A stretch of 64,000 nt of DNA from Phaeosaccion multiseriatum (Eukaryota > Protista > Ochrophyta, other classes), in the NCBI GenBank assembly GCA_965112735.1, contig OZ218965.1:1-64000 (forward strand), written 5' to 3'. Positions 9,736 to 63,688 of this stretch are shown here, one piece after another. The translations under genes and the position numbers were made by a program. The notes under the pieces were generated by a model. That model did not search any database. It saw only the letters and a program-made list of their open reading frames with translations, and was not told the DNA's origin. Within the stretch, counting starts at the first letter, position 1. Each line of letters starts with the position of its first letter.

Positions 9736-10102
9736 AACTGTATTCGGGTGCCATCTAAAAATCGAGCATCGGCTCGTACTTGAGGGCTCTTTTGTAGCAG
9801 AGCATTACCAGCGAGGAACAGCACACAGGATTTCACCCCAATACATATCAACACCCTCGTTTGGAGACGTGAGACCAATCGCTAGCTACAGCTCGCCCAA
9901 CACACAAAGTCCACATGGCGCCCACAGGAGTAAGCCCAAAGTTCGATGTGTGTGTCTCTATCTATAGTCTCTGCTCGGTATTCTTTCACAATCACATCTT
10001 TGTGCATTTCATTGCGTCCCTCGAGTGCCCACAAGTCACAAATCGGATACAAATGCCGATGGCGTGAGGGCTCAGGGGAGGGGATGGCAGTGGATGGGCA
10101 GC

Positions 10103-11313
10103 TCAGAAGGGCGCCAGGCCGGAGAGGGGCGGGTCTGAGAAACAGAGCAGAGTGAAGGGCGCCTCCACTGGGGCGAAGGTACTGACGACCGCCACATATC
10201 GCCGGCCTGGCTCAAAGTGTAGCTCCAACAGGGGCGTGGCCGTGCCGCACACGCTGCCCATGTACACGCCGCCGCAAGAGGTCGAGGCCGCGGGAGCTGG
10301 GGGGGGGGACGGGAGGAAGCGGCAGGGTTAGGCAGAGGAGGAGAGGGGGGAGAGGAGAAGTGAGGGAGGAGGACGGGATACCTGTGCCGCTCAACAGACG
10401 CAGACACGCGCACACACACGCGCACACACACACACACGCACACTCGCGCGCACACCCTGACGCACCAAGGCTCCCATCGTATCAGGTGCTCACCTGGCCT
10501 CGCTCGTCCACGGGGTACACGGCGACATTCAAGAAAAATGGCCGGCCTCCCCTTGGGAAAAGGGCCCGCCCCCTTGGGGACAAGTAGGCGCAGCAGCACC
10601 CTGGTGGGCCTCTGCTGCGCCCCCCCTCCCGGCCGCAGCTCGAACTTTGGATTGTCGAGGTATCGGCCGTGGTTGTTGCGCCCCGCCGCGGAGCCGCTCA
10701 AGTGGTCCCAGCGCCCCTGTACTGTCTGCTCAACCATGCCGGCTCCCTCGGGCAGCAGCCGCCGGACTACTGGGGGGGCTGCGCCCTCGCTGGCCGTTTC
10801 CGTGTGCGAGATGGGGAGGAGGAAGTTGCCCTCCTGCCCGGCGCGGAAGGTGCTGCGGGGAGGGGGTTTCAGTTTCGGTTAGATCGTTAGCACATGCCAA
10901 GGCCTGCATCGCCATGCTCCGCCTTTGAGAGCGAAGGGGCGCAGTCCCCGTACCTCCGATGCCCCTGCCTCCCTGCCGTCCGCGGCCACCCCCCCCTCCC
11001 TGCTCCCTCCCTGCTCACCTCACGACGATCACATAGGTGCCCGGTCCACGGTCCCCTCGGCGCAGCAGAAGCCCTCTCGGTACGCGCCGCTGCCGACTAC
11101 CTCTTGCTCACGATCCACAGAGTCCACGCGGAGGGCCTCTCCTCCCTCCGTTCTGAGGAGCATGAAGTTAACTGAGTAGTCTTTGGGGGGCTGCAGCTGG
11201 ATGTGCAGCCTCTGTGTGCGGCTCAGTGTGACGCTCCACTGCGGGTTGAGGCGGAAGCCCGCCCTCCCCAAACCGCCCCCCGCCGTGGATGAGTCCCAGC
11301 TGCCAGCGATGGC
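10103..11313 (-). pseudogene. 5'-truncated calpain-7/PalB-like gene (two calpain domain-III modules)
   Basis: Spliced exons read IAGSWDSSTAGG..FRLNPQW..GTYVIVVS|TFRAGQEGNF..VQGRWDHLSGSAAG..YLDNPKFEL..RYVAVVSTFAPVEAPFTL..*. GT-AG introns; 1-nt frameshift near 11042; no protease domain upstream. Confidence 0.75.
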
Positions 11314-11479
11314 CTGTAGGGCGGCGGGCCAGTGGGATGGCAGTGGAGGGGAAGGGGTTGAGAGTTCGATCGCATCTACAGCACCCCCACAAACTCACTC
11401 ACGCACTCACTCACTCACTCACTCACTCACGCACCCGCTGTATCCCCCCTCTCTCTCTCTCTCTCTTTCTGTCTCTCTC

Positions 11480-11787
11480 TAGCTCCGCGATCACCTCCGC
11501 TGTGTGTTGCTTCACTGCAAAGGCCTCCGGCCACCGAGTCAAGTAGTCAATAAACACCACAATGTACTTGTTGCCGGCATCTGTGAGCGAGAGATCCACC
11601 ACATCTACCCCAGTCAAAAGGGGCGTGAATCTCCACATCATCTCCATTGGTAGGAATACCCACTACCTGGCGCAATCTCTTCCGACAACAGCGATGGCAT
11701 TGAGCACCCCACCTCTGGCAGTGGGGGTGCATGCCCGACCAAGCGAATCGAGCGGCCATCTTGCGGTAGGTGCGTGCAAAGCCGAAG
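11480..11787 (-). mobile_element. Ty3/Gypsy LTR-retrotransposon integrase fragment
   Basis: TYRKMAARFAWSGM..CHRC (zinc-binding end), then PFDW-GVDVVDLSLTDAGNKYIVVFIDYLTRWPEAFAVKQHTAEVIAEL (start of rve core). Frameshifted and truncated at a microsatellite; no LTRs seen. Confidence 0.85.
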
Positions 11788-13754: not shown

Positions 13755-13859
13755 CTGAGTGGGGGTAGGAAAGGGAAGGAGAGGAGAGTCGGCGACGGGA
13801 GGGAGAAGGCGAGGGCAGAAGTTCAACGCAAAGGTATCAATCGCTTTCGGCTGTTTGTT

Positions 13860-13989
13860 CATGTCACAAGGAGAGACTCGAGTTTGTGCCGTACCCTCTT
13901 CTTCTTCGATGTCTGGAAAGCACTCAGACAAGCTCTGGGGGGAAAGCCAGCAGGACAAACGCTGCGTCGTGCATGCTCCTCTCTTGCCT
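13860..13989. repeat. Left direct repeat flanking the ATPase cassette
   Basis: CTTCGATGTCTGGAAAGCA(C/G)TCAGACAAGCTCTGGGG...TGCATGCTCCTCTCTTGCCT is shared with 17272-17371. Confidence 0.85.
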
Positions 13990-14004
13990 AGCCCTTGAGC
14001 AAGC

Positions 14005-17500: not shown

Positions 17501-18320
17501 CTGCATTAGCGGACGCATGCTGAATCCCATCCACTGCCACGCATAACTCGGTATCATGCATGTTGGTAATTTCCTTAGCAGGGTCGTATCCTTGACGTGC
17601 TCCATTCTCGTGTCCCTCGAGGTGCTCCTCGCGGTGCTGCGACTCCTCCTGCTGTCGTCGCTGCCGCTCCTGCTGCTGCCGCTCCTGCTGCTGTTCTGCT
17701 GCAGCTCCCCAAGGAGGTCCTGCATGGCTTGGAGCACGAGTGTGTACCTCGACAAGGCATCCTCCGAAGACTCGAAGTGGGCAGGCGCCGCTGCGGCGTT
17801 GATGAGCCTTACTCCGAGGCGGTCTGGCCGGCGCTGGACGTGCTCGGTGAAGAGATGACGCATCTGGGGCAAGCTGTTGGAGTGCTGCAGGCGGCCTCCG
17901 TGGAAGAGCGGCGCCGCTGCCATGTTCGCGAGACAGGAGAAGAGAGCGCACGCCGGGTGGTGGGGTGGTAAGCAAAGATGCATTCATTCACATGTATCAA
18001 CGCAGAGCCCGAAGGGGGCAAAAACAAGCTTCCGGAAAACCCAGCAATTCCAAAGTTGGGGCACAGCCTCTTGGCGGGCGATGCTGCAAGGTATGAGTGA
18101 CTCTCAACGCGAAAGGCAGGGTTAGCGGAGTATGGAGGGCGCGTGAGTGACAACTGCCTACAACTTGCCTACGTTGTCCGGGTCGAGTCTCAGAGGCGGA
18201 GACTCTCCTCGAACATGGCGTCTGCGGAGGCCTCCAGGGACACGAGGTTGGCCGCCAGGGTTGATGCAAGGGAGGGGAGAGACAGCACCTGGAGCAAATC
18301 AAGCGCAGCAGCCACAGGTT
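17501..18320 (-). pseudogene. Probable 5' exons (TPR/linker) of the same GT41 gene
   Basis: TPR-like AMFEESLRLDPDN / CLANMAAA.LFHGGRL. Exon ends WMGFSMRPLMQ|GT in phase 0 and would splice to the phase-0 acceptor at 13754 (ALSASLVAFAPSL), resembling the pre-catalytic segment of TPR-GT41 proteins. Confidence 0.55.
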
Positions 18321-21909: not shown

Positions 21910-21959
<50 letters not shown>

Positions 21960-25029: not shown

Positions 25030-25072
<43 letters not shown>

Positions 25073-27470
25073 GGAGGAGGAGGAGGAGGAGGAGGAGGTG
25101 GTGGCGGCGGCGCTCTTCTCTCTTCGCACGTCGTGGTGAGCCCTTGGGGCCAAGGTCGCTCTCTCCCTGACTCACCTCTACGTCTGTGGGCGGTGCCTCC
25201 AGCGCCATGTGCCCCCACTGCTGACGCCTAAAGTCCCCCAGCAGGCGGTCGGCAGCGTTGTTCATCTCGCCGTGGTAGAACTTCTGTGAGGGGCAGGCAG
25301 GGACAGGTGACCATTTGTTTGATTCGGTCAATGATTCGGTTGATTCCAAGTGGACGAAGCGATCCATCAGGGTCAAGTGAGAGGAGGAATACAGCGCAGC
25401 AGGGGGTAGAGGGAGGAAGGGGGTTATCTTGCCGCCGAGAGACGGCCCGCAGCCTCCAGCTCTAACTCAGACTCAGACTCAGAAAGGGGCGCGCCTGCCG
25501 GGCCCGTGGGTTCGCACCCACCCATCCACCCACCCACCCTGTGGTGCCACATACGTAACTAACACAACACATAACAAAATACTCAATAGTAACCCACCTT
25601 GGCCACGAGGTACACAAACTCCTGCCCCGAGTGCCTGCGCGGGTCAATCTTGAGTCTCTTGATGAGGGCGGGCATGTCCACGTACCCGGGGAACTGAATG
25701 GCGCACTCTACCACCCGGTCCATCATGGCCGCCGCCACCACCTGAGTCAGATGGCAGCAGACAGGGGCAGGGAGAAAGCAGACGGATGGCACCAGAGAGC
25801 AGAAGGGGGCCAGAGAGGGCGCAAGGGATGGATGGCAGTAGACACCATAAGTGGGGCATAGAGAGAGAGAGAGAGAGCAGAGACAAGACTCAGTCGCTCC
25901 GAGCAGAGAGCAGATGGATGGCAGCATACACAAGACCCACTCGCTCACCTGCGAGTCGTACGAGGCCTGCCCGATGTCGTTGCAGATGGCGAGCTTGAGG
26001 GCCTGCTCCTGATCGTCCTGCCTGGCGGGGATGATGCCCGGAGTGTCCAGCAGCTCCAGAGAGTCCTCGGGGTTGTTGCCCTGCGGCAGGCCAGGGGGGA
26101 TGGCAGTGGACGGGGGGGGGGGGGTGGTTAGACAGACAGGTGTCAGGACGCGAGGGTGCGACGGAGTGTATGAATGCTTGTTCGGCGAGGGTAGCGGGGG
26201 GGTTTAAGCAGGGGAGGGGGAGGGAAGCAGACACACACACACACACACACACACGTTCCTGTGGGGCTGCGGAAGAGGGCGGAAGATCTTAGGAGAGCAA
26301 AGACAGGCATATGGGCAAGAAGTCGACCCCCTCCCACCAGTCCTTCACTCACCACTCCTCCCACTCGGATCCAGCTGATGGAGCGAGTCACGCCCGGAGT
26401 GTTGCGCGTGGCGCAGATCTGAGGACAGAGGTGGAGACAGTGTGGAAAGGATGTTTCAATACCGTGGTCACTCACTCCTATAACATGCCGGCAGGCAGGC
26501 AACCAACGCCCAGAGAAGCTGTACACAAACACACAAAGGGCATGCAAACCCCGGAAAGAGGGCCAACGAGCCAGAGACACGATTCAACACCCCATGGATG
26601 CAACGGACACAACGGACACCACGGACCGACCTTCTTGCCGATGAGGTGATTGATGAGGGCGGACTTGCCGACGTTGGGGAAGCCGATGACGAGCACGCGC
26701 ACAGACCGCGGATTCAGGCCCTGTCGCAGGCGGCGGTCGTTCACGCGCTGCCCTGCCCTCATCGCCGCCTTCTTGATCTGTGCACGTTGAAAGAGGCCGG
26801 TAAAGGGGGCGCGAAATAGGAAGCCAGAGTCAGAGGGGGGCGAGGGAGGGAGAGGAAGAGGACGGAATCAACCCACCCCCAAAAAATCATCGGAAGCAGC
26901 CACTGCACGCACCAGATGGACCCCCCTGCCGCGCTTGGAGTCCACGAAGAAGACCGGCACGTTGCCCGATCTACCAGAGCGCTTGAGGCCCCCCTCCTGC
27001 GTAAAGTACTGGTGCCACTCCTTCACCACGCGGGGAGGCACAATGTCCTTGCGGTTCAGCACCACCAACAAGGGGCGATTACCCACCCATTCGGGCACCT
27101 TCTGGTGCGTGGTCGAGAGAGGGATTCTTGCGTCCCTGACTTCGATAACCACATCCACAAGCTTGACATAATCCTTCAGCTGGCGCTCTGCCTTGGCGAT
27201 GTGTCCCGGGTACCAGTTGATCATGTGGCCTCCTTGGATGCCTTCGTTCTCGTAGTCCTCATTGCCGAACTCCGCCTCTCCCTTCACACGCTTGTTGAAC
27301 TTCGCCCTCAGCCTGTGGCTCATCCCCCGTGAGGGCTGCTGCTGCTGCTGCTGCTGCTGCAGGCTCCACCCCCTCGCCCCCACGCGACACCCAGCAGGCG
27401 CGACGAAAGCATCAGCGCCCAGCGAGTCCAGGTAGAGAAGCCCGAGTATCCCAGCCGTCGTTGTCTTCAT
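24719..27470 (-). CDS. rbgA: Plastid-targeted ribosome biogenesis GTPase RbgA/YlqF family
   Basis: Seven exons. [64 protein letters not shown], ends GDFEGW*. Leader [25 protein letters not shown] is a signal peptide + Phe motif. Confidence 0.93.
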
Positions 27471-29942: not shown

Positions 29943-31705
29943 CAGAGCCGAGAGAGGTGAGGGAGGGGGAGAGGGTGAGGAGAGTGGGAGGGAGAGAGAG
30001 AGGGGGGGGGGGGGCAAGGGAGGTGCGAATGACGAGCTGACTAGGGCAAGACAGGACAGACGAGGCGGCGGCTGGGGAGGTGCTAGTCTCAAGGCCTAGT
30101 GCACGGCTTGGGAGCGTTTGGCTTTGATCTAATCACGAGATGGTGCCAGCGGGCAGGCCTTTCTCGGCGAGGAGGAAGGGAGGGCCGAGCGCTTCAGAGC
30201 CCTGTGATTGACGCCCTCACTTCCCGCCCTGCTCCGCTGCACCCGTTCACGGCCATCCGTCGGCGTCATGTTTGTGTGCGTGTGTGTGTGTGTGTGCGTG
30301 CGTCTCTTGTAGACTCAGAGGCGGCAGAAGCGGGGGGCAATGGATGCAGCGGAGGCAGCGAGGCCCCCGGGGGGCGGGCACCGAAGCTGGGCCTGTCGGC
30401 GGCGGCGTCAATCTCTCTTGGCTCGCGTAGGTTCTCTCTTGACGCGTCGCCCGCCCCCGTGTCACCCTCCTGGGCCTTCTGCTCCCCGGGGCGGCGCGGA
30501 AGGAGTATGAGCAGGAGCATGAGCACGAGCACGCTGTGGATGGCAGCGGACGGCATCTCTGTCCTGACACCGGCACCGGATGGGCTCTCTGTCCTGACAC
30601 CCTCACCGTCGCTGTCGTGGCCGCGGAGGGCGCTGTGGTCTATGGCCTCCTCTGGGCCCTCTTTGGCCTCTCCGGGGCCGGCGTGGGACTCCGCTCCGTC
30701 GTGTTGTGATCTCGCAGCCCACCCCCCAGGGCTCCCCTCTTGGGGCGGCGGAGGTGTTGGTGGTGGTGGTGGAGGGGGGGGGGGCGGTATGATGCTGAGC
30801 AGAGGTGCTGTGACCATGCGTGCGTCTGGCCCGTGCGGCTCGGCTGTGACGGGGGGATGGCAGTGGATGGGAGGGCGCTCATCTTTGGCGGGGGCGTTGG
30901 GTCTCTTCTTGGCGACGACCCTAAGCAGCGCCCGTCGCCTTCGGAGCACTCACCCGGGGGGACGGGGGGGGGGCAGGAGGAGAATGCCAGGAGGAGGGGC
31001 TTCGGTTGGGCACAGCCTTGGGCATGGCATCAGGCAAGGGGGGGGGGTGGCAGCTCGCTTCCGACCACTTCACGCCACCAAAATCTTGAGATTGGGGTAG
31101 TGATTGTGGAACCAACAGAGGCGATACAGTGTAGAGCAGTGTGTAAACATAAAAGCAAGCACTGCGTTGTGCCGGTTTGCTAGTCGCGTCTATAACAACG
31201 AATGACCGCCTATAATCATGTATGTACACAAAACAAAACAAAACAACAACAGCCGCAGCTGTTGGTGATACAGCAGCAGCAGCAGCAGCAGCAACAACAA
31301 CAAGCCTCCAAGAGACTCGTGATTGGCGCAAAGCAAGTCAAGGCAAGGTAGAGGCAGGGCAAGAGACACCCTCCTCTTCGCTTCGCTCCACCCCAAGGGA
31401 CAGCCCCCCCTCTCCAATCTCCCCAACACACAGCGCCCTCCCCTGGAGTAAGTCAGTGAGTGGCTTCATCCCTCTTCATGGAGTAAGTCAGTGAGTGAGT
31501 GAGTGAGTGAGTGAGTGGCTTCACCCCTCTTCCTCTTCTTCGAGTCGCTGCGCTTCATCCCTCTTCATGGAGTAAGTCAGTGAGTCACCTCTCCTGTCAG
31601 TAAAGTATATACAGCCGCTTCACTCCTCTTACGCTTCATGCAGTCAACTTCCTCCATCCAGTCAGTCTTTTGGGGTGGAGTCGAGTCGCTTGCTTCACTT
31701 TGAAC

Positions 31706-38773: not shown

Positions 38774-38811
<38 letters not shown>

Positions 38812-42853: not shown

Positions 42854-42890
<37 letters not shown>

Positions 42891-45800
42891 GGGCTGGGAA
42901 CGGCGCCGAAGCGAGAGGTGCCAACGGAGCGAATAGGGGAGGAGGAGGAGGAGGAGGAGGAGGAGGAGGAGGAGGAGGAGGAGCGCGCAGAGGGGCAGGA
43001 GCGGCGGGGGGGGGGCAGGGACAAGCGAGCAGCAGGGGCAAGTACGAAGAAGGGGCCCCGCTTTCGCAGCAGCCGCAGCAGTTGGTGATACCGCTGCCGC
43101 AGCAGCAGCAGATGCAGCGCATGAATCGCCAACAGCAGCAGCAGCACCAACAGCAACACCTGGTAGTACAGCAGCAGCAGCAGCAGCAGCAGCGCCAGAC
43201 TGCGCCTATGCAGCAGCGCTCTCCTCACCGGCAACAGCCGCAGCAGCAGCAGCAGCAGCAGCGGCAGCAGCAGCAGCAGCAGCATGGGGGCGCCTTGCCT
43301 CTGCCTCAAACTCAAACTTCTTACCAAAGTGCGGACAAGGAGCCTCCCCCTGCGCGTGCCCAGCCACAAACACAAGGACCTCCTGCCACCCTCGTGAATG
43401 GGGTTGGGGTGGCGGGAGACCCAAGTGCTGGGGGTGCGGCCCCTGCTGTGGGCCCTCCCCACCCCGCCCCCGACTACGACAAGCTCGTGCAGAAGGTGGA
43501 GGAGGAGGTGGTGCAGCGCCTAGCGAGAGCGCAAATGATGGGAATGATGCTCAAGGCGCACACTGAGGGGGAGAAGGAGAAGGAGAAGGAGAAGGGCAAG
43601 GACGAGGGGGGGGGGGGAAGGGGAAGGGGGTGGGAGCCGGAGGAGGAGCGAGGGACAGGGACAAGGACAAGGACAGAGACAGAGATAAGGAGAAAGACAA
43701 CCAACGCGACAAGAAGGGAGGAGGAGGGACGAGGAAGGAGAGGAACCAGGACAGAGACAAGCAGAGGGACAGGGACAAGAACTATCGAGACCGCGGGGGG
43801 GGCGGGGGGGATGGCAGTGGATGGAAGGGGGGAGGCAAGGCCAACAGCATTGACGACCTCATCCTGAAGCGTCCGGAGAGGAGCAGCATGTCTCCCTTAC
43901 CGCGCAGGGCGATGCTTGACAGAGAGGAGGGCGTGGTGCTGCTCAGCGAGCCCAGGAAGCAGGAGGCGGGGGGCGAGCAGGAAGGCTATGGGCAGGCATA
44001 TGGGCAAGGTCAAGGGGGGCAGCTAAAGAAAAAGGGAGAAGGGGGGGCAGACTCAGCAGCAACGGGAGCCACCAAAGAGCCTACCCATACGCCTGCTCTG
44101 CCCCCCCCCGACCTCGACAAGGAGGACCCGGAAACCCTCCCCCTCGAGCGGCTCTACCAGGTGCGGTGCGGGGTGGCAGTGGATGGCAGTGGGTGGCAGT
44201 GGGTGGGATCGATCCTTAGTATTGTTGGCGGGGAGGGCTGACGCGCTCTGGAAGCTCCTCGATGAGATGTCGACGAGGGCTTTCGGAGTGCTCTACTTGT
44301 CCCTCCTTGCACCTCCCTCACCACCCTCCATCTCTCTCTCTCTCTCTGCAGGGCATCAGCAAGCTTGAGAAGCAGCACAGAGCGCTGCAAGACCTCATGC
44401 GGGTAGAGTTGGGCCTCGCAGAGAGCCCAAGCAGCGGAGAAACCCCAGGGGGAAGCCAGTCGGAGCAGCAGCAGTCGTATGGGCAGAGCAGTGGCAGCGC
44501 CAGGCAAACGGGTGGGGCAGCGGCAAAGGCCGTCACCATGCTGGCCCGCCCGCCGTCCTCTTCCTCGGTTCCGCACGTACAGCCGCTGGTGGGACAGGAG
44601 AGCGCAGATGGCAGCGGAGGGCAGCAGGTGTTTGGAGGCGTGGTGAGCAGCGGCCTGTGGGACAAACTCTCGCGCTGCCGCTCCACGCTCTCCAAGGCCC
44701 TCGGATACGCTCTTCGGAGGGACGGGTATGTCGACGGACAGGACAGGCATAGGTATACGGGCATGGCCGCCGCCAAGAAGGCGCCTGGCAGGCTGTGGAT
44801 GGTGTACTACAAGGAGCTGGACTTGACACAGAGGAGTCTCAAGAAGGCCCATGCCGCCGCTGCGGCTGCCTCTTCCGCTTCCTCCTCCCCTCCCCCCGGG
44901 CTGAGCACCAGTGCTTCGCCGGGCAGGACTGCTGACTCCCCCGAGAGTGATGGCACCACCCCCGCCGGGCAGGAGAGTGGCAGCAGTCCTGGCACCAGGC
45001 ATATGGGCAGCGACGGCAACGTGCAAGGGTTGAAGGAGCTGCTCTTTCACCTCATTGAGTTGGCGGAGGGGGATATGGGGAGCCTTAGGGCAGAGCTGAG
45101 GGCCGGAGAGGCCAGGGCGGTTGGTAGTACGGTTGGGGATACAGAGTCCGGCGGTGATGCAGAGGCGGACCGGGGCTGGCCCACACTCAAGCAAGGAGGA
45201 GCTGCAGCAGCTGGGGCTGTGGAGGGGGCCGACGACGAGGAGGACGAGGAGGAGGACGAGGACGAGGCTGCTGACAAGGTTGATGAGGACGAGGGGGGAG
45301 ATAAGAGAGACGCAGGGGGGATGGGGATGGCAGTGGATGCCACCAAAGACGCGGCGGTGGCGGAGGGGGGGGGAGGAGGAGAGGAGGGGGGTGAGGGGAT
45401 GCGGAGGGCGCGTCGCAAGGCCTTGCTGGAGCAGCGGGCAGCAAGGAGGAGGAGGGCGGAGCAGCGCAAGAACCACCTACACGCCGTGCAGGTGCGTGCG
45501 TTGGGGCGTTGGTGGGACGGGGCGTCGCCATCTGGGCCTGGGCTGGGCGCAGACAGAGTTGATTCGTTAATTCGTTACTTTGGAGGGGTTGGTGGGTTCT
45601 TTGGTTGAAATTGATTGATTGGTTGGTTCATTGACACTCTGAGGGCCATCAAGGGCAAGGTCACAACCCTCGAAGGGCGTAGGGTCTAAGGCCGATGGAC
45701 GAGCGAAGAATGACAGGAGAGGGGGAGGTCGTGGGGTTGTTTTCAAACCCAGTGTACTGCTCACTGACTCTCCTTTCATCCGTTTTGCTTGGCCATATGA

Positions 45801-48800
45801 CCCCCCCTACTACACCACACACGCCCCTTAGGCCCTGACCCTGAACCTCGGCGACCTTCAGCGCTACCGAGTGCTCAACGGCTTCGACTCTATGGGCACA
45901 TCCATGACCACCTCTCTCAACACCTCTCTCAACACCTCTCTCAACACCTCTCTCAACACCTCTGTCGGCATGGAAGGGCTGCACTTGCGTGACTGGAGCG
46001 GTGCAGAGGCGCTCTATAGAGAGGCTTTCCTCATCGCCCCCGCTCGGGGCAAGGCGTGGTCACAGTTGGCGGTGCTGGCGCAGTACCGCAGAGACCCCCT
46101 CACTGCCTTCCACCACTTCCTCAGGGCCATGTGCGCGGAGGAGGGGGGGGGTGTTGCCGGCAAGGATAACCTCCAGGCCATTCACGCCAGGTAGGCTGGG
46201 GTAGGGTGGGTTGTATTGCCTTACATTACGTTATCTTGTGTTATGTGTGGGTAGTCGTTTTGGGTGTGTTTGGGGGGGGAGGGGGGGGGGGTTCTCTGTG
46301 TGTAGTTGTCCTGACACCAAGCACCAAGCGAGGGAGCAATCGACTCAACAACCCAACCAAACCGCCCCATACAGATGCAAGCAACAGCAGGCACAACTCT
46401 CTCCCGTGACGGCCCTGGACAGCCCCACCGCTGATGAGCACCGCCGCCGCTTCGTGCTGCACCTGGTGGCTCTCTGCGGCAACAACGTCGCCAGAGTGGA
46501 CCTGGAGGCCTTCGGAGGCCTCGGAGGGACAGCAGTGGATGGAGGAGGAGGCCTTCTCGCCGCGGTGCTGCGCCATCTCACTGGCTATGTGCAGCTCAGG
46601 CTCCTGCAGGAGGATGGCGCTGCCAATGCCGTATCACCAACTGCTGGAGCTGCAGGGGGCGACCCCACGGCCTTGGAGCTGCCCCTCTTCCTGTGCAAGG
46701 TCATGACCGTGGCGCTGTGCGGCAACATGTGCGCGCAACAAAGCTGGCTGGGGGCAGGAGCACAGGGACAGACAGACAAGCCGGTCTCAGGGGCGGTGCC
46801 GGGACAGAGGGGGGAGAGGGAGAGGGATGCGGGCGCGTGGGTGGAGGACACGGCTTGCAGTCAGGCTCTGGGGCTGTGCTTCGAACTGGCGGGGAGACTC
46901 TCGAGCTTGGGGCAGCACACAAGGGTCAGGGGGTGGGAGAAGGTACGTAAGGATACGTAAGAATATGTAAGGATATACATAGGGATATAGTAAGGATACG
47001 TAGGGATACATATACATTGGAGAGAAGTGGCGAGAAGTGGTTGGTCGGTAGTAGGGCAATAGAAAGGGTTGGTCGGTGGGTAGTGGGAGCCAGCCTCAAC
47101 CCATGCAATGCTCCTTTCCCCTTCGCTCCCTCCCTCCTCCACTGCCATCCATCCAGAGCACGGCTGCTGCCCTAGGGCTTTTCTGCGATTGGCTGCGCTG
47201 TCAGAGCTCTTTCGCAGAGGGAATGCGCAACACGCAGAAGGAACGCTTCGACATGACCATGCAGGGCCTCGTGTCCTTCATCAATCGGGTGGTTGGGGGG
47301 GGGGTGCTTCTATGGGGGGGGGCTGACTCCAAGCACCCCAAGCTCACCAAGCAGGCCGTGGATGAGATGATGCAGGAGATGGCAGTGCACGCGGAGGGAG
47401 TGGAGGTCTCCGAGGCTGTCATGTTGAGAGAGGACGTGGAGATGCAGGGCTTCCCGCCGCTGGAGCACCTGGTGGGGAAGAGGGCCGCCGCAGCAGCCGC
47501 AGTAGTTGGTGATTCGGTTGTAGCGGTTGGTGATACAGCGGAGGCTGGCGATACAGCTGCGGTACCTGTTGGTGACACGGCAAGAAACGGCAGCGTCGTC
47601 ATCAGTGTCGGAGGCACGGCACCGGAGGATGGCAGCAGAAGGGCGAGGAGGATGGCAATGGATGGGGCCGACAAAGAGTGGGCTGTGCGGACTCTGCGGC
47701 TGAGGGCCTTTGCAGAGGTGGCTGTGCTGCGTGGCTGGATAGCCAGGCACAGGGGGGAGGGGGGCGAGGAGGAACAGGACGAGGGGGGGGAGGAAGAGAA
47801 GGAGGAGGAGGAGGAGAAGGGGGTGGGGATGGCAGAGGACAGGCAGGGAGGGGGGCAGCTCGGGGGGGGGGAGCTGTACAGGACGCTAGACGGGCCGCTG
47901 TACGCCACAATTGTCGCAGCCTCCGCTGCGGCCAAGCACCAAGGTGAGGAGGGTGGGAGGGCAGAAGACCAGGACTACTGCTGATACGGCTGTATCGCCA
48001 ACTGTTGCTGCTGCTGCTGCTGCTGCTGCTTCTGTCTTCTCATGCTTCTCCTTCTCCTTCTTGTTCTGCCGTGCTGCAGGAGACAATGCCGGCTCTGCAA
48101 CTGGCTCTGGCTCTGGAGTCGAGGCCGTCGAGCAAGGGCAGGAGCAGGACATGCAGCAGTTGGTGGTACAGGAGCAGGAGCAGGAGCAGGACCCGCACGA
48201 GTTCTGGGGGCCGCCGAAGCCTCTTCCTCCAAAGGAGCCGCCACAGGAGCAGCAGTTGGTAGTACACCAGGAGCAAAACTCTGTTCAGCAGGCGCAGCCG
48301 CTCTCTGAAGAGCAGGAGCAGGAAATGCAGCAGTTGGTGATACAGGAGCAGCTGCTGCAGGCCGAGAGGGACGGAGAGCTGACCGCCACAGCCGTCGCCT
48401 TCGCCGGCCTGGGCCTCCTCGACGATGACGATGACGATGAGGGAGACACTGCTGTGTCACCAAGTGGTGCAGCTGCGGATGACCTGCAAGCGGCAGCGGC
48501 GGCGGCGGTAGCGGCTGTCACAGCAGAGGCCACGGGACAGCAGATACAGCAGTTGGTGGTACAGCCGCTCTATCACCACCCGCTGTCGTCGCCCCCCCCT
48601 CCCCCCCCGGGCTTCGGTCCGCCCGCGTCTGCGGGGGCAGGACGGGCCCTCTCGCCATCTGCGGAGGCAAAGCCTGCCGTATCACCAACGACTGGGGCAG
48701 TGGCTGTGGCCATCGGGAGCGACAAGAGGCCCTTGGTGCGCTGCGAGAGGCTGTGCAAAGAGTGCTCCAACACACTGGCGGAGGGGGAGGGGGAGTGCGC

Positions 48801-51302
48801 CTTTTGCGGGGCGGAGGTGGAGGTGAGTGAGTGGAGAGAGAGAGAAGGGGAGTGGGACGTCGGATGTGCTCGATTCGGGCCTTCCTCTCTCTCTCTTTGA
48901 TCTCTCCCTCTTCCTCTCCCTCTCTCTCTTTGTTTCCCTCTCTCTCCCTCTCCCCCTTTACGTCTCATCTACTGGTCCTGACAATCCCTACCCCGCGCTG
49001 TTGTTCCCTTGCGCTGCTCTTTCTTCCCTTGCGGTGTTCTGTGCTCCCTTGGGATGTTCTGTGGCAGGTCCCGTCCCTGCCCCCCGGGGGTGACGCGAAT
49101 GGCGATACGAGTGCCCCCTCGGGTGGTGTGTCTGTCTCTTCCGCCCCCCCCCCCACCGCCCCTCGCTCCTCCTCCATGCTCGCTGTGGACCTGGAGCAGG
49201 TCAGGAGGGAATCAAACAAAGCGTCCAGTTTGCGCTTGAGGCCGTCCCCCGGGGGGACAGGAGCAGGCTCGTCCCCCGCCAGGCATATGGGCATAGGGCA
49301 CGAGGGGCCTTTGCCTTTGATCATCATTGACGCTCCGAACGTCGCCATGCGGCATGGGCTCAAGAAGCGGTAAGCCTGGCAGTACTTATATGTGTTTGTG
49401 TTTGTAGGAGCGTGCTTTTGGCTTCTCTGTGTAATGTGTAATGGAGTGGGTGTGCTTTTGGCTTCTCCTCGGAGTTGTTTGGGCGAAGGGAAAAGGAAGA
49501 GAGCACAATCGGATCATGTGTGCCCTGACAATTCCTTGAATTCCTTCCTTACTGACTGAGTGAGGCATGTTTGCTTGCATACAGACAACCAACCAACAAC
49601 ACCAAACGTTATGTATGAACGGTCGACCGAATGGTTGTTTAACGGAATGAATGCTCCTCTACGGAACATTCTATGTTTTGTTTCCCAGATTCTCTTCCGA
49701 AGGGGTCCGCCTGGCGCTCGAGTTCTTCCGCACCGCCGGACACAGGGTTCTGGGCTTCCTGCCGGGTGAGAGTCAGAGAGATAGCTTAGAGGTATACGGG
49801 TAGGAACATGGGCCATGCGTGTCGCCCCATCCCGTGTGCCTGCGTGCCCCATACGCCTCTAATCGAATCCTTCCCTCCCGCTCCATACGCCTCTATCATG
49901 TGACCCCTGCCCAGACTATTACATGGACCAGGAGCGTCGCAATGGGCTCGTGCGTGCGCAGAAGCTCGGGCTTGGGCAGGTGCGGCCGTCGCAAGTGCCT
50001 GACGACTGTGCCTTGCTGCAGGTAAGCGGCAGTGAGGGGGGGGGGGAGAAGGGACGGGGGGGCGGAGGGAGGGAGGGAGGGAGGGAGACAGAGGGGGAGT
50101 AAGGAAGGGGGACCTACGTCACATGGGACTTGCTCGAACTCTGACTCTGTTTTACCCCCCACTGTCCTACCCGTATGCCTGTACCATGCCCTGTCCACCC
50201 CATCCGCTGCCATCCCTTCAGGCCCTGGTGGACGAGGGGCTGCTCATCGCCACTCCTGCCCAGGACTACGACGACAGGTAGGGATGGATGGCAGTGGATG
50301 GCTTGCAGAGGGGATCTGCCCTTCACTGACTGACTGTCGTGAGCAGTCCACGGCAGCTCACCAGTTGGCCTCTGCTACCCTCTCAAAGAAGGGACAATTC
50401 TTTTCTTGTATTTGGCCTAGCCACTGACCAAATGTCCGCTTCTATTGGCTCTGGGCCCAAATCATTGCCTTATCCTTTGCATTACAATCACAGCTACTGC
50501 ATCAAGTACGCAAGGGGCCACGGGGGCTATGTCGTTAGCAACGACATGTACAGGTAACGAAAGGACCTGTTGGTGATACAGTGGCACAGAGAGGCCAGAG
50601 AGGAGGGGCACATGGGGAGGGTAGGGGTGGACGCAGGAGGGGAGGGAGGGTTAGTGGTGGAGTTAGCGGTGGGGCTTTCGTCATTGAGTTTGTGATACGT
50701 TTCTCTTGCTCTGATCTCATCCAGTGCTGCCTCCTCCCCGCCTGGAATGGGTGTCCGGCGCTGTTGGTGGTTGGCGACGACTCATTGCGACCCTTCCTCC
50801 CTTCCTTCTCAGAGACCATGTGAAGGGCATCGAGGAGCGAAAGGCTCGCGCCTCTGCAGCCAAGTGGATTAAGACACACGTCATCAGCTTCACTTTCGTG
50901 CAGTCGGAGTTCATGCCCAACCCGTGAGTGTGTTGCATCGCTTGGGTCTGGGCCCGGGTCTGGTCTGAGCTTGGGCTGCATCGCATGGGGAAAGAGGAGG
51001 GGGCCCCCCTTCCTCCCCCAATTGATGCTGGCCCTCCCCATCGCTGGTTGAAGCTTTAGATGCTACTTGATGTCAGGAGGGCGGGGCTGTTGCTGCAGGG
51101 TCAGCAAGGCGTTGCTTGCACGGTCACTGACGCCTCTCTCCTTCTCTCCATCCCTCTCCTCTCGCTCTCCCTCCCTTCCCCCTCCCTTTCTCTCTCTCCT
51201 CTTGTCTTCCTCCTCCCTCTTCTCCCTGTTCGCTCTCTTGTCTCCCCTCATCACGCCCCCTTTGCTTTGTACAACAGCGACTTCTCCTTTGGCAAGGGTT
51301 GA
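41528..51302 (+). CDS. EST1/SMG6-like protein with C-terminal Regnase/Zc3h12a-type NYN ribonuclease domain
   Basis: About 13 exons. Long disordered N-terminus; EST1 TPR motifs RLWMVYY, NLGDLQRYR, AEALYREAFLIAPARGKAWSQLAVLA..HHFLRAM, DNL, FCDWL, LREDVEMQGFPPL; CxxC..CxxC ribbon; NYN motifs IIIDAPNVAMRHG, FSSEGVRLALEFF..GH, TPAQDYDDSY, VVSNDMYRD, FTFV..FMPNPDF. One frameshift in the G-run 43606-43617. Confidence 0.88.
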
Positions 51303-52697
51303 GCCTAAAGGGTTGAGCAAATGTACGCAAGCAAGGCATGCTTGAGCCTAGCCTCTCTGCGCAAGGAAGGCATGGACCGAAGTCACTTCTTTCTCTCTCT
51401 CTCTCTCGCAGGGCAGACATGAGACATGAGGCAATGGTGACGAAATGACACGAGGCAGGCCGTAGTGCCGCACACTCACCATGGACTTGTATGGCCTGGT
51501 CTCGCCTCGCGCTTGGTCGACCTGTGCATTGCCATCCATCCACTGCCATCCACGGCCATCAACGGCGGAGAGGAAGGTTTTCGGATCGCTCGTAGGGGTA
51601 CCGCTGCGTCCACCACCGGGAGAGGGGGGGTGTGGAGGGAAGGCAGTGGATGGCAGCAGATGCCCGCTTGCGTCGGTGAGGCCCACACAGGAGAGGGGCA
51701 GAGGAGTGCAGGAAGGGGAAGGGCGCTCCGGACTAGAGACATGCACACTTTGGGCACAGAGACAAGCGCAGCACGCGCACGCCATGCGGCATCAGCAGAT
51801 CGTCACACCTACATGCTTCAGAGCAGATCGTCACACCTACATGCTTCAGAGCTTCAGCGTGTCTATGTCTCGAAGAGGGGGAGGGAAGCGAAGCCGAGAA
51901 ATGTACCTGCTTCAGAGATTCAGAGGCGTTTTGGAAGCGAAGCAGAGATATGTACTCGTAAGGGAGGGAACAGTGCAGTGCAGAGGCCACGGACGGGGAA
52001 GGGCCACGCCACACACACACACACACGCACGCAGGGAAGAAGGAAGCCGGCACAGGCCTGGAGGGGTCGAGCTCACGCAGGGGGGCTGGGGCTAAGCTCG
52101 ATGCCCCCCCCCCCCATCAGAGCAATTAGTGCAGTGTTCTGTCCTGACGCCAAGTACAGCGTGGTGCGAAGGAGTGAAGTGAAGCGACGAAGCGAAGCGC
52201 GTGTAAGTCACAGTTGGCGCAGTCATGGGCGCCGCACGCGCCTTCCGGCAATGTATTGGGAGTGCAGGGTCAGAGCAGAGGCCGTATCACCAACTCCTCC
52301 GTTCCACAAGAGGGAGGCCCTCTGTATCACCAACTGCTTGACATGATCTGTCAACGGATCCTATTGGCCGATAGAGGACACATGCTTGAGTGGCACAGTG
52401 CGAGAGTGGAGGAAGTAGGGAGAGAGCGGAGCAGGGCGGGGAAGTCCACCGGGCTTGTCGGCTGCGACAGCAGCGCAGCAGCAGCAGTTGGTGATACAGA
52501 AGACGCATCGGCAGATGGTGATACAGCGCACACCTCTTCTCGGCCGAAGCCCAGGGGGGCCGTCCCCTCCTGGGGGGGCGAGGGAGAGGGCTCGTTTCCT
52601 GTATGGCCGACTTCCTCGTGCTCACTGCACTCTGTATTTGATTTTTTAATATATATACAACACCCACACTGCAGCTCTCATGGTCCCTGCTCACTTG

Positions 52698-55600
52698 CTA
52701 CTGCTGGGCGGCGCGTAGGGCCGTTGCTATCTTCTCCCGTCGGGCCTGAGAGGATTGTTGTAGGGAGGAAGCATGGCAGACCAGAGCCGAGCCGAGAGCC
52801 GAGCCGAGCAGAGCACAGGAGTGAGTGCACATCAGATCATTTAGGGAGATGGAAAAGGCCACACAGGGGGGCACTTGGTGTCAGAGGGTTAGGGTTAGTA
52901 CTTGATGTCAGAGGGTTAGGGTTAGTACTTGGTGTCAGAGGGTTAGGGTTAGTGTTAAGCCCTCTCCCCTTGCACACTCCCCACCCTTGGCGTGTCAAAA
53001 GCAATCCCTCGCTTGTGTTGTGTAGAGGACTTTGCTTTGCTTTGCTTTTGCTTCTGTACTATAAAGGCTTCTGCTGCACCCCCACTCTCACACTCTCCCT
53101 CCACCCTCAACGCCGCCCTCACTCCATCTCCGGGCATACGGGCACGGGTACTGACCTTGCACCTTTTGAGGTCCTCCCCCCCCCCCGCGAGGGGCAAGAG
53201 CTCATCTGTCCATCGCCTTGCCTCCAAGAGACGCCCCACCTCCAAGCACGTCAGGCCCTGATGGCACATGATGGCACATGATGGGACATGATGGGACATG
53301 CCCCAGAGGCAGGTGGGGGTGTAGAGAGAGGGGGGAGGGAGGGAGGGGAGGGAGGGAAGGAGGGAGAAAGAGTGGGAGGGAGGAGGGAGGGAAGGAGGGA
53401 GGGAGGGAGGGAGGGAGAGAGGGAGAGAGAGAGGGAGGGAGGGAGGGAGGGAGAGTGGGAGGGAGGAGGGAGGGAGGGAGGGAGAGAAAGGCAGTCGGAG
53501 AGAGGGGGGTAGAGAGAGAGGGAGAGACAGCCAGAGAGCCACAGCAGGCAGTCAGTCGGGAAGGACAGTTGGAAAGGGCAATCTTGATGATGACACCAGA
53601 GAGACCCAACGGGGCACAGCACCCAGACAGGGGGGCGAAGAGCAAGCCAGGTATATGGGTAACACGCCAGGCATGTGGGCAGAGCATTCAACAGAGACGC
53701 ACCCCCCTCAACCCTCTCCCCTCACCAGAGCGTTGAGCATCTTAATCTGGGTGTCTGAGTCCCTGAGTCTCCTCGCCAGGGCCAGACACGCAGTGTAGTA
53801 CTCCACCGCCAGCTGTGATTTCCCCAGGCGCTTGCTCACTGTGCCGAGATTTCCGAGGGCCCTGACCTCGAGGGCCGCCCATCCTCCACAACGGGCAAGG
53901 CACAGCGCAGAGGAGAACAGGGAGGCAGCCTCCTGCGAGGCACAGAGTAGAGGGAAGAGGGGGGGATGGCAGTGGATGGGGAGGTAGAGGGAAGAGGGGG
54001 GGATGGCAGTGGATGGGGAGGTGCGAGCGCGTGAGTGGATCGACTCCCACAGGAAGGCCCTTCCCTTGGCTCTTTGCAGTGGCCCCTCTGAGGCACTTTC
54101 CCCCTCATGCCTCCCCATCGACTGCCATCCACTGCCATCCCTCCCCTCGTCTGACCTTGATAGAGTCGGTGGTGTTGAGGTTGAAAAGGGCGTTGGCCTT
54201 ATCGATGGAGGCGCCGACCGACAGAGGGGTCAGGGAGGGGGGGGTTACGGCAGAGGCAAAGGCTGCAGTGGGCAGAGGAGGAGGAGGGGGGTGGCAGAGG
54301 ATGGGGACGGGGAGGAGAGAGGAACGGAGGGAGACAAGAGAGAGAGAGAGACAGGCAGGGAGAGATGAGGGGAGGGATGAGAGAGGGAGAGAGAGGGAGA
54401 GACAGACAGAGAGACAGACAGAGAGAGGAAGAGGAGAGAGAGAGAGGAGGAGAGAGAATGAGAGACAGGGGCAGAAGGGGGGGGGAAGGGGCGAGGCGGA
54501 GAGTGATGATGGATCCTCATCCCCCCCATCCACTGCCATCCTCCATCTGAGAGACACCTCCCTCTCCTCACCCTTGAAGCCGAGGAGATGCTCTCTGAGC
54601 TTTGCTCGGTCGTCGCCATCTGCAGTCGCCGCCATGAGCTCGGAGAAATGCAGGCGGATCTTGCCATCCCACAGTGGAGCCTGCCCGCCTGCTGAATCAC
54701 CAACTGCTGCTGTATCACCAACGGCTACTGTAGGATTGACCACTGTGTCACCACCTGCTGCTGGTGGCGGTGCTGCTGGTGGTGCTGCTGGTGCTGCCAT
54801 TAGAGGAGGTGGGTGAAGGTGTTCAGTTTCTCCTCCTCCCCCTGGTCCACACAGAGGAGTACCTCCCCTCCACTGCCCCCTCTCCTGCCTTTCTCCCTCT
54901 GTGGCTGCTGCGTTGGCGGCCTCACAACCGTCACAAGTGTCACAACTTGCTGCGGCTCTCTCTGTGTAGCAGAGCACCAACTGCAGGTGCGCGTGCCTCT
55001 TGAGGACGGCACAGCGGTGGGCATACGCGTCCCCATCCACTGCCATCCCCATCCCCATCTCCCCTCCGCTCCCCCATCCACTGCCATCCCCTCTCCCCTC
55101 CGCCCCCTCCAACGCGCGGAGCGCCAGCAGGAAGGCCTCCTCTGCCGCTTTGGAAAGCGCACCGCACCTTCGCGTGAGTACGTCCCCCCTCAGTCGCCAG
55201 GCCTTGGCCTCGAGGAGCACCACGTCACGCTTATCCTCGTAGCGAGAGGTCACAATTGGCGCAGCTTTGAGAGGAGACAACAACGTGGCTAGGGACGGCT
55301 TGAGGGGAAGGAGCCCCTCGGTTGTGCCATCTGTGACTTTGCTGCTGCTCAAAGTGTCAGGAACGCTTCTGCTGCTACTACTGCTACTGCTGCCGCTGGC
55401 CTTACTGCTCCTACTCCTGCTGCTGGTCTCACTACTGCTACTGCTACCACCCTCAATACTACTGGTGCTAACGCTACTGTCCTTACTGCTGCTGCCCTTT
55501 TCGTTCTCCAATGCGACGGCCGCGCGGATAGCGGTGAGCGCGCGGTGCAGCAGCTGCAGAGGCTCCTCCCCCTCCTCCTCCTCCCTGTTTTTCTCCTGCC

Positions 55601-58266: not shown

Positions 58267-58300
<34 letters not shown>

Positions 58301-58847: not shown

Positions 58848-58878
<31 letters not shown>

Positions 58879-61433: not shown

Positions 61434-61468
<35 letters not shown>

Positions 61469-61469
61469 C

Positions 61470-62281
61470 TGAAAGTGCGGTTCCCGTGCTTGCTGTCACT
61501 GTGGTAACTGCCGCAAGTGCCCCTCGAGCTTTCTGTAACTGCTGCAACTGCCCCTCGAGCTCCCCTGCCGTGGCGAGCTCCGTAAATCCGTTGGGCACGA
61601 AGATGGACGTTCGCCTCCTCTTTGGTGGCGTGGCGACGCACTTGCCAAAGTTGCCAAAGTTGCGAAAGCTGCGAAAGCCCACCTCCACATCTGTCAATGA
61701 ATGCACCCTCACATCTGTCAATGAATGCACCCTCACATCTGTCAATGAATGCACCCTCACATCTGCAGACCGAAGATGTGGAGGGCGTTACGAGTTTCGA
61801 ACGAAGGCGTGTGCGTGTGCGTGTGCGTGTGCGTGTGCGTGTGCTGTACGAAAGAAGGGGGAAGGTGTAACGGGAAGGTAAGGGATATGTAAGGGGTGTG
61901 TAGGCGGTACGTAAAGGATGTGTAGGCGGTACGTAAGGAGTGTGTCGGCGGTATGTAAGGGGTATGTAGGCGGTATGTAAGGGGTATGTAGGCGGTATGT
62001 AAGGGGTATGTAGGCGGTATGTAAGGGGTATGTAGGCGGTATGTAAGGGGTGTGCAAGTGGGTGGTGAGGGCCGGGGGGGGGGGGGGGGTGGGGAGCAAG
62101 ACAAGCAAAAGTTTGGGCAGACATAAAGAGACCTTGACACACGCGAAGGGAGTGGGGGACACACACAACACGCACAGATGCACACACAGACGCACGCACA
62201 GACGCACGCACAGACGCACGCACCGTCGACTCCGCTCTTGTTCCTGGCGCCCTTCGCCTCCAGCTCCGCCAAAGTGTCCAT
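61470..62281 (-). CDS. Possible exons of a hypothetical or degenerate gene (may continue to the acidic ORF at 60206-60590)
   Basis: [19 protein letters not shown]|[18 protein letters not shown]| are phase-1 compatible GT-AG exons. No domain recognised; downstream joins unresolved. Confidence 0.3.
61885..62052. repeat. 22-bp minisatellite (GTATGTAAGGGGTATGTAGGCG)
   Basis: About 7 tandem units. Confidence 0.9.
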
Positions 62282-62778
62282 AAAGGACCTTTCTACCCTT
62301 CCTTTCTTCCTCTCTTCTTCCTACTGCTATTCATTCTACTGTTGTTGCTGTTGTTGTTCCTGCTGCTACTGCTGCTGCTGCTGTCCGCACCACCGCTGCC
62401 GTGGTCGGGACTCGGCCTCTTCCTCCTCCTCCTCCTCCTCCTGGCGCTGCTGTATCACCAACTGCTGCACGTCCATGCCTCTCTGCCCTGAAGAGGGGGG
62501 CCGCACAGACCACAACGCTCGGAGGAGTGTTCCGAGGAGAGTTCCGAGGAGAGTTCTTGGTCGGCAGAGAGGAGTGTTCCGAGGAATGTTCTTGGTCGGC
62601 AGAGGACCTCTCACCCACTCAAAACAGCAGGGGAGACCGCGAAACAAACTGAACCGAAAGCTGAAGCTGGAATTTCAAATTGAGGGCCGAGAGAGAGAGA
62701 GAGAGATAGCTGACACCGAAACTGTCCCTTCATTCTTCTGGAGAGGACTGGTACTGAAACTGTTTGTCCCTGTGCCTA

Positions 62779-63688
62779 TCACCAGTAGAATGTCCCCGGC
62801 AGGTACTTGTTGACGAGGGGCTCGAGCCACGCACGCGCCTGTGGAACAGAGGGCGCTTGGCGGGAGGGAGGGAAGCTCGACCCGGGGGGGCTCGACCCGG
62901 GGGGGCTCGACCCGAGGGGGTTGCACATGCTCACGCTGCGGACAGTGGCTCTGGAGGGAGGGAGGGAAATATCACCGGGGGGGGGGGGGTAAGCGGTGTC
63001 AGGACGGGGAACCGTTTGCACACTCGTCTCTTTGCCCGCACTCCCTCTGCCTCTCGCTCCCTCTCGCTCCCTCTCCCCCTCTCTCCCGGTCCCTCCCCGC
63101 CCTCCCCTCCCTCCCTCCTCCCTCCCTCCCTCCCTCCCTCCCTCCCTCCCTCCCTCCCTCCCTCCCTCCCTCCCTCCCTCCCTTCCCCTCACTCTGCCTC
63201 ACCTCCTCACAGCGTCGAACTGCTGCACCTTGCCGAGTACCTCCCTGTCCCTGTCACTCTCGAGCTCTCGATACGCCCCTCTGGCGTGCCACAGCTCTAG
63301 GGGCCAGTAACGCACCAGAGAGAGAGCCTCCGGGGGGAGGTGGTTGCTGGGATGGCAGTGGATGGCAGTGGATGGCAGTGGATGGCAGTGGATGGAAGTG
63401 GATGGCATATGGGCACCGGAGAGTGTCAGGACGGGTTAGGGTTAGGGTTGGGACCAACACCCAATAAGGAGGGCTGCCTGCCCGCATGCCTGCCCCCCCT
63501 GCCCTCCTTGCCTGTCCCACTCCTCGTATCACCAACTGCTGAACTGACCTGGAGCGTTTGTTGCTGAGCACCGCGTGAAGGTACTCGGTGCCTGCCCATG
63601 GCAGCAGCACGGCATCCAACCCGCACCCCGCACAGTTCATACCCAAGGGGGGCACACTGTAGAGGGGGTGCAGGCAGTCGGAGTTGAG
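62779..63688 (-). CDS. 3' exons of a hypothetical gene that probably starts beyond the window
   Basis: Exons 63688-63549, 63346-63211, 62838-62779 join in phase: LNSDCLHPLY..NKRS|SNHLPPEALSLVRYWPLELW..QFDA|ARAWLEPLVNKYLPGTFYW*. Confidence 0.5.

Follow-up and report, generated by a model that had tools for sequence, protein, structure and literature searches.

The 64,000-nucleotide stretch of Phaeosaccion multiseriatum DNA analysed here (GenBank assembly GCA_965112735.1, contig OZ218965.1, positions 1 to 64,000; hereafter the window) carries many copies of a 16-nt word, GGATGGCAGTGGATGG, which we call motif B. About 4,000 sites in the genome carry it; the word is real at the level of DNA and is not accounted for by composition. 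Most copies are intronic and point away from the nearest exon, with the word itself (the G-form) in the first tens of bases of an intron and its complement (the C-form) in the last tens, ahead of the pyrimidine run and YAG. Motif B is neither a transposon nor debris from a satellite, and it is not an effect of composition. The best explanation, to which we give about an even chance of being right, is that it is a lineage-specific, fixed 16-nt word multiplied by repair-templated copying, with a polarity imposed by splicing, arrays generated by slippage and intron stems arising as a by-product. The copying is probably carried out by repair; we infer both this mechanism and any role in splicing.

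The word, its phase and its arrays

In the window, motif B is matched 37 times at up to two mismatches, against 0.08 expected from dinucleotide shuffles, and these matches group into 25 clusters on both strands with unrelated flanks. Genome-wide results for the word are pattern counts rather than analyses of position; across the 67-Mb genome they give 4,401 exact copies (2,145 on the plus and 2,256 on the minus strand) and 11,123 at up to one mismatch, with 0 and 5, respectively, for the reversed word used as a control. Copies with one mismatch (6,722) outnumber the exact ones. The Markov, phase and coding tests used a 254.4-kb sample consisting of window positions 9601–64000 and C1:1.0–1.2 Mb. 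Local G-rich composition under a high-order Markov model, which the original prediction had named as a possible source of the enrichment, does not produce it: the sample is expected to hold 0.0004, 0.0008 and 0.026 copies at orders 1, 3 and 5, and 45 are observed. Orders 7 and 9 expect 5.2 and 33, which is mere memorising of the word itself. The 12-mers of motif B top the over-representation among non-simple 12-mers of the sample, above those of motif A, another recurrent word of this DNA. The genome is that of an intron-rich eukaryote with 58–60% GC and TTAGGG telomeres, and a literature search found GGATGGCAGTGGATGG in no paper.

Copies listed by the original prediction were recovered within 1–3 bases, the sole exception being the one near 23794, where there is only a 3-mismatch C-form (CCCTCCACTGCCATGA); the 17527 and 23794 regions are not homologous. 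Further copies lie at 30538, 31919, 46527, 47650, 50200 and 54289. The tandem form is real, with five overlapping words at 63350–63405 and others at 44171–44206, 32112–32137, 51536–51561 and 54115–54140, and the reported flanking by G- or C-runs also holds, as G exceeds C in the ±30-nt flanks, read on the word's own strand, in 63 of 65 clusters. Freedom from stop codons in all six frames was considered and rejected as a special property of motif B, since 34% of same-composition shuffles are also stop-free; being stop-free, the words confound gene prediction, and they confound repeat masking as well.

The unit is a fixed-phase 16-mer and not a 10-mer. In it CAGT joins two GGATGG hexamers; the four bases between paired GGATGG hexamers are CAGT in 45 cases, CAAT in 10 and CAGC in 4, the rest being singletons. 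When the 16-mers of the tandem form, (GGATGGCAGT)n, are sorted by phase, phase 0 occurs 45 times and the other nine phases 17–24 times each, in arrays only; each solo copy begins and finishes on GGATGG, and arrays do likewise. Exact genome-wide counts fall from the 4,401 16-mers to 400 26-mers and 138 36-mers, and of 4,001 sites 3,739 (93%) are solo words with sharp edges and 262 hold at least three hexamers. Because the array step ratios, 0.09 and then 0.35, are not geometric, the solo words are primary, and the 10-bp arrays are rare expansions that followed from them. No long satellite was found in the genome-wide counts of 16-, 26- and 36-mers and arrays, where the longest exact array has about 15 units; together with the single phase and the predominance of solo words, this contradicts the earlier suggestion that the copies were seeded from a satellite. 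Nor are they fragments of a single longer repeat family, which had also been considered: 33 independent solo sites show flank identity past the 16-mer at the null level, word-bounded introns have unrelated interiors, and self-BLAST of 254 kb returned no longer family around motif B. Solo-site flanks are purine-rich and C-poor without conserved positions, and both sides are G-rich.

Direct pairs of the 12-mer core with an inner gap of 70–130 nt number 779 genome-wide against about 15 under uniform placement, an expectation that, like those of about 7 each for convergent and divergent pairs below, uses about 5,700 cores scaled from the sample. This direct clustering comes mainly from tandem and higher-order arrays with periods from 10 to 41, and arrays of periods 10, 14, 20, 26, 29, 31, 36 and 41 each include motif B. 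The word is a minisatellite core in the sense that one core occurs in arrays of differing unit length at many loci. Jeffreys et al. reportedly described minisatellite core sequences in 1985, with a short G-rich core common to arrays of differing unit length. Motif B resembles these in being a short G-rich core in arrays of periods 10 to 41, and differs in that 93% of its sites are single dispersed words placed relative to splice sites. How local duplication multiplies the word along with splice-like signals can be seen in an exact 37-bp tandem duplication at window positions 53947–54022: every unit holds a donor-like GTAGAG, a G-run and a single copy of motif B.

Scanning metagenome contigs with the 26-mer recovered five unrelated contigs (L021–L025, GC 44–70%), each with one (GGATGGCAGT)3-6 array; they show no dispersal and none of this genome's other words, and are uninformative on sister species. 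Two of them, L022 and L024, represent one locus in two assemblies, in which the word is combined with a (GGGAT)n run. Elsewhere the GGATGGCAGT 10-mer can form an ordinary minisatellite; dispersal of the 10-mer is, as far as we have seen, particular to this genome.

Placement and polarity at intron ends

The recurring layout reads exon, GT(A/G)NG, 0–30 nt of G-rich filler and G-form at one end, then C-form, pyrimidine run, YAG and exon at the other. It can be followed in a FUN14-family gene, at window positions 31896–32145 on the minus strand, where both arms carry motif B. The Pfam FUN14 match to positions 11–38 ends on the last residue of the exon upstream of 32145, the match to positions 41–92 opens with the residue that begins the exon downstream of 31896, and the junction is in frame; from this split of the profile (38/41) at the exon borders we take the segment to be a genuine intron. 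In an Ion_trans gene (L006), exons matching profile positions 36–141 and 203–234 start 8–22 nt past C-form arrays of three and six words (L006:344–379 and L006:2643–2708). The FUN14 and Ion_trans exons were searched separately against Pfam profiles, and the support is exon by exon rather than for a joined protein. Of the distinct genome-wide pairs in which a C-form and a G-form are 70–130 nt apart, about 20 of 24 read as acceptor, exon and donor on one strand, in the order C-form, pyrimidine run, YAG, exon, GT, G-run and G-form.

An annotation-free test employed a codon model trained on long open frames and compared coding potential 20–110 nt to each side of the word, in G-orientation. Coding potential was higher upstream than downstream in 48 of 62 clusters (77%; Wilcoxon p = 2e-6). 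By class, 27 clusters were arm-like, 2 reversed, 9 coding on both sides and 24 unclassifiable, and the exon of the arm-like sites lay on the word's strand in 9 and on the opposite strand in 18. The original prediction that motif B is translated in exons survives for a minority, as about 9 of the 62 clusters have coding potential on both sides (43809 and 47650 are among these candidate exonic copies), whereas most lie at exon–intron borders. Its description of a DNA- or RNA-level signal was apt insofar as the word is real at the DNA level, but the accompanying picture of frame-independent exonic copies gives way to one in which most copies are intronic and polar with respect to exons. Motif B also occurs in open reading frames, spacers and minisatellites. 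A regular expression for donors within 45 nt of the word was discarded, as chance donor-like pentamers in G-rich DNA keep it from discriminating.

The copies in the window and their surroundings are listed below.

10082–10097, plus strand: solo exact copy, GTGAGG 19 nt upstream
11335–11350, plus strand: solo copy with 1 mismatch, GTAGGG 20 nt upstream
17527–17542, minus strand: solo copy with 2 mismatches
26098–26113, plus strand: solo copy with 1 mismatch, then a G11 run; upstream, the opposite strand has coding potential (3′ arm type)
30538–30553, plus strand: solo copy with 2 mismatches
30855–30870, plus strand: solo exact copy
31896–32145, minus strand: FUN14-family GT-AG intron, homology-validated; G-forms at 32112–32137 start 8 nt past the GT, and two C-forms (31899–31934 read on the plus strand) end 3 nt before the last intron base
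41760–41775, plus strand: solo copy with 1 mismatch in an open frame that is G-rich and of low complexity, possible exon
43809–43824, plus strand: solo exact copy, coding potential on both sides, candidate exonic copy
44171–44206, plus strand: three-word tandem array beginning 10 nt past a CAG/GTGCGG 5′ splice-like site (cut after CAG)
45325–45340, plus strand: solo copy with 1 mismatch, strong coding potential upstream only
46527–46542, plus strand: 2-mismatch copy within an open frame of the EST1/SMG-like gene
47135–47150, minus strand: C-form on the plus (gene) strand, 25 nt ahead of a CCCTAG acceptor-like site
47650–47665, plus strand: CAAT variant, a candidate exonic copy with coding potential to both sides
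50200–50215, minus strand: C-form on the plus strand, then CTTCAG and a 56-nt exon (50222–50277)
50286–50301, plus strand: G-form 8 nt past the GTAGGG donor ending the 56-nt exon 50222–50277
51536–51561, minus strand: two overlapping C-forms on the plus strand, upstream of a short exon-like stretch
51638–51653, plus strand: G-form 8 nt past a GTGTGG donor-like site
53933–54155, minus strand: putative intron, from splice signals only; GTCAGA donor and G-form array at 54115–54140, two C-forms (53964–54016 on the plus strand) within the 37-bp tandem duplication, then a pyrimidine run and CGCAG
54289–54304, plus strand: 2-mismatch copy in a G-rich tract
54526–54541, minus strand: G-form 30 nt past a minus-strand AAGG/GTGAGG donor-like site; a C-rich tract follows
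55033–55089, minus strand: two exact words 41 nt apart within an SH2-domain gene's open frame of 955 aa; Gly/Trp-rich, candidate exonic copies
63350–63405, plus strand: five-word tandem array with GGATGG at both ends; interstitial TTAGGG repeats 28 nt downstream

The last exon of the FUN14-family gene (31709–32375, minus strand) also scores weakly for an EF-hand loop (DLDKDGKVDGNDL). The EST1/SMG5-7-like gene (45832–48897, plus strand) has an Est1 DNA/RNA-binding domain (E = 2e-8) and extends over several open frames, and motif B lies in or adjoins at least five of its segments. A search for transcript or annotation support for the SH2-domain open frame, as a whole and for residues 60–330, gave no match.

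Generic G tracts share the polarity more weakly, and motif B therefore belongs to a general intron design with a G-rich 5′ arm and a C-rich 3′ arm, of which it is the most specific member. Away from motif B, 61–62% of such tracts (GGGAGGG, G7) point away from coding sequence (p about 1e-7), all G-rich tracts and long (GGGA)n or (CCCT)n microsatellites have the same polarity in weaker form, and motif A has none in the same coding-potential test. Over the 200 nt after candidate donors G drops from 0.49 to 0.32 and C climbs from 0.08 to 0.26. The arrangement is that of G-run/C-run splicing enhancers: donors are followed by G-rich and acceptors preceded by C-rich sequence. In the Ion_trans gene (L006:300–2920; C1:1050300–1052920), the 5′ arms hold (GT)n, (GGGT)n and (GGGA)n and the 3′ arms (CCCT)n runs of 230–500 nt on the sense strand; its introns have complementary repeat classes at opposite ends. 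Acceptors are preceded by a pyrimidine tract and an AG-free zone; the C-form is pyrimidine at 12 of 16 positions (75%) without AG or GT, and the G-form is purine-rich and has CAG and GT. No description of polar intron repeats in algae was found in literature searches.

Convergent pairs of the 12-mer core, as in one intron, number 56 genome-wide at an inner gap of 70–130 nt against about 7 under uniform placement (7.7-fold), and divergent pairs, across an exon, number 28 against about 7 (3.8-fold). Copies sit near 5′ and 3′ splice sites as in intron-bridging repeats; across-exon pairs are enriched too, and 93% of sites are solo. Confinement to intron arms could by itself yield a several-fold surplus of inverted pairs of this size, and most copies have no partner. 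In introns with the word in both arms, the predicted RNA fold closes the intron by a terminal stem (z = −3.3 and −2.0); in the FUN14 intron, which has the z of −3.3, the stem is present in both the minimum-free-energy and the centroid folds.

Explanations for the origin of the word

Under the reading we favour, motif B would multiply by short templated repair, through ectopic short-patch conversion or end-joining-type templated insertion, with homology or microhomology on both flanks coming from dispersed G-rich tracts, which would also tie the orientation to the G-rich strand. The demands of splicing would then sort the orientations into the two arms: the C-form may suit the region ahead of the acceptor because it is mostly pyrimidine and lacks AG and GT, and the G-form may be tolerated only in the 5′ arm because it is purine-rich and has CAG and GT. 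Slippage between the word's own two hexamers would make the 10-bp arrays, and local duplications would build minisatellites of many periods around the word. Where both arms carry it, a terminal stem in the pre-mRNA could bridge the splice sites, as a by-product or bonus and not as a requirement.

Several observations weigh against this reading. Introns were called from splice signals, from a weak codon model and from three cases with homology behind them (the FUN14 intron at both ends and two Ion_trans introns at their 3′ ends), and 24 of the 62 clusters fell in no coding class. Genome-wide, GTGAG within 30 nt of the word occurs 499 times upstream and 445 times downstream, with little asymmetry, a test that is weakly discriminating because G-rich DNA yields that pentamer by chance. 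No copying event was seen in this analysis, and self-BLAST of local sequence gave no informative pair of paralogues with and without the word. Templated repair would predict some partial words and carry-over of donor flanks, of which there is no clear excess; that result would also suit a selected footprint or a template of fixed length. The genome has three genes for family-A DNA polymerases (C15:2336267–2338667, C9:577520–579764 and C4:3160604–3162924), each split into several exon matches; they are candidates for polymerase theta at most.

A rather unlikely alternative is that motif B is a selected cis-element, namely an intronic splicing enhancer of about 16 nt, a protein or small-RNA site, or one half of an intron-bridging stem that defines short GC-rich introns, so that copy number and sharp edges would result from selection on a footprint and not from copying. 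The edges are indeed sharp and fixed and the copies mostly full-length, they lie within tens of bases of splice sites, same-intron pairs exceed uniform placement by more than across-exon pairs do, terminal stems are predicted, and precedents exist. Complementary (AC)m-(GT)n repeats at opposite ends of zebrafish introns act in splicing, and human introns combine GGG within their first 40 nt and CCC within their last 40 nt (Lin et al. 2016, PMC4691745). Motif B introns are similar in having complementary low-complexity sequence just inside both splice sites that can pair across the intron, and in that the two co-occur more often across an intron than across an exon (56 pairs to 28 here), but motif B is a specific 16-nt word, mostly in one arm, and its pairing is known here from predicted folds. 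G triplets were reportedly described by McCullough and Berget as intronic splicing enhancers. Precedents of that type include G-rich as well as C-rich intronic enhancers of splicing in short GC-rich introns (Murray et al. 2008, PMC2481429). These share with our introns G-rich sequence downstream of the donor, C-rich sequence upstream of the pyrimidine tract and a GC-rich setting; they are, however, degenerate 3–4-nt runs arising anywhere, whereas one exact 16-mer present thousands of times implies copying. Selection alone makes no 4,000 identical 16-mers, and a copying process would still be needed. Moreover, 93% of sites are solo, most word-bearing introns carry the word in a single arm, decay is tolerated (6,722 one-mismatch against 4,401 exact copies), the word also lies in open reading frames, spacers and minisatellites, and a stem would bury the splice sites themselves.

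It is improbable that the words are surviving terminal inverted repeats of an introner or miniature inverted-repeat transposable element (MITE) family that made these introns and whose interiors have since decayed or turned over. Introners and MITE-like intron-generating transposons are known from Aureococcus, Micromonas and Amoebophrya (PMC7789003, PMC9860276), with terminal inverted repeats in a stramenopile and Amoebophrya (PMC7789003). The resemblance includes 8–20-nt inverted repeats at intron ends, a marine protist host and a hairpin that may join exon borders; some introns carry the word inverted in both arms, and in L001:693–990 the inverted similarity extends to the splice sites over about 24 of 29 bases. 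The defining features of introners are nevertheless absent. The interiors of about 45 word-bounded segments are unrelated, save two paralogous pairs, and there is no flank sharing past 16 nt; the distance from splice site to word varies over 0–30 nt and the words per arm from 1 to 6; no target-site or direct repeats were found at the borders of the three introns inspected (window 31896–32145, window 53933–54155 and L001:695–979). Most copies are unpaired, and the variants of the two arms, at the same spacing, combine as expected for independent arms (CAAT/CAAT 0, CAGT/CAAT 9, CAGT/CAGT 56). Neutral decay, moreover, cannot wipe the interiors and yet keep the 16-mers exact. Also with little claim on belief, and marginally less, is a telomerase-like RNA-templated polymerase that writes the word at DNA breaks from a 1.6-unit template, one round giving a solo word and rare repeated rounds the 10-bp arrays. 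It would account for the 1.6-unit fixed-phase architecture, for arrays that always finish on GGATGG and for the interstitial TTAGGG that adjoins some copies (window 63433–63450), and G-rich upstream flanks could prime the synthesis. Hexamer slippage in the solo word, however, accounts for the same phase, both flanks are G-rich and not the upstream one alone, left-truncated words are not in excess, the true telomere repeat here is TTAGGG, and no candidate template RNA was found, no search for one having been made. The copies might, finally, be chance pieces of a (GGATGGCAGT)n satellite or a side effect of G-rich composition: tandem forms do exist and the same 10-mer forms isolated arrays in unrelated organisms; this account has next to no chance, being refuted by the phase test (a single phase in all solo copies, and no long array) and by the Markov test (at most 0.03 expected against 45, with the reversed control at 0 against 4,401).

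Repair-templated copying remains our preferred account of motif B. Over-represented short words are otherwise familiar from bacteria, as Chi, uptake sequences, HIP1 and REP. Motif B is like them an exact oligonucleotide present in thousands of copies, far above composition, in genes and spacers and on both strands; unlike them, it belongs to a eukaryote and is polar to introns rather than to replication, with no uptake or recombination machinery implicated.

Other repeats of the window and the meaning of motif B

The original prediction regarded motif B as independent of motif A, and we agree: there is no close spacing between the two (3% against 5% within 100 nt) and no link in orientation (19 against 25). 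They do share gene-rich neighbourhoods, as 61% of motif B copies lie within 1 kb of motif A, where random placement gives 33%. Inside the SH2-domain open frame, a CAG-type run at window positions 54700–54740 on the minus strand holds motif A twice, as GTTGGTGATACAG and GTTGGTGATTCAG; the run lies between the copies of motif B at 54526 and 55033. GGTGTCAGGAC, a third word that recurs, has 10 matches at up to one mismatch in the window against 2.1 expected. It is exact at 26139, 30561, 30591, 42580, 46308 and 62995, with a further region at 63422–63450, and is sometimes followed directly by interstitial TTAGGG, at 63433–63450 and in a 27-bp unit repeated three times at 52873–52953; in genome-wide listings it adjoins motif B. 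The contig starts with about 7 kb of (CTGGC)n (1,406 units, 99% matches), distal to a CCCTAA telomere run at 7033–7243, after which a 42-bp subtelomeric satellite extends over 44.8 copies (7242–9093). It is odd for a pentanucleotide satellite to lie beyond the telomere repeat; the assembly may be at fault here, or the chromosome end may be of an uncommon kind.

A bolder proposal, which is possible and on balance doubtful, is that motif B represents a new kind of self-propagating 16-nt sequence without an enzyme, termini or target duplication of its own, copied by repair between G-rich tracts in parallel to motif A in CAG tracts, and sorted by splicing. Transposons, retroposition and satellite dynamics normally explain dispersed repeats in eukaryotes, and they leave longer homology, termini or variable phase; an exact 16-mer at about 4,000 sites (about 11,000 matches with one change allowed) shows none of those marks. 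Its orientation, tied to intron ends, links a mutational copying process with splicing constraints. If the copies are repair-templated, this genome would be a natural system in which to see how short templated insertions shape genes and seed minisatellites, and such insertions would also build complementary intron arms like those that aid splicing in fish. If the bolder proposal is true, 'repair-borne words' would be a general and undescribed route by which eukaryotic genomes, coding sequence included, acquire thousands of identical oligonucleotides.

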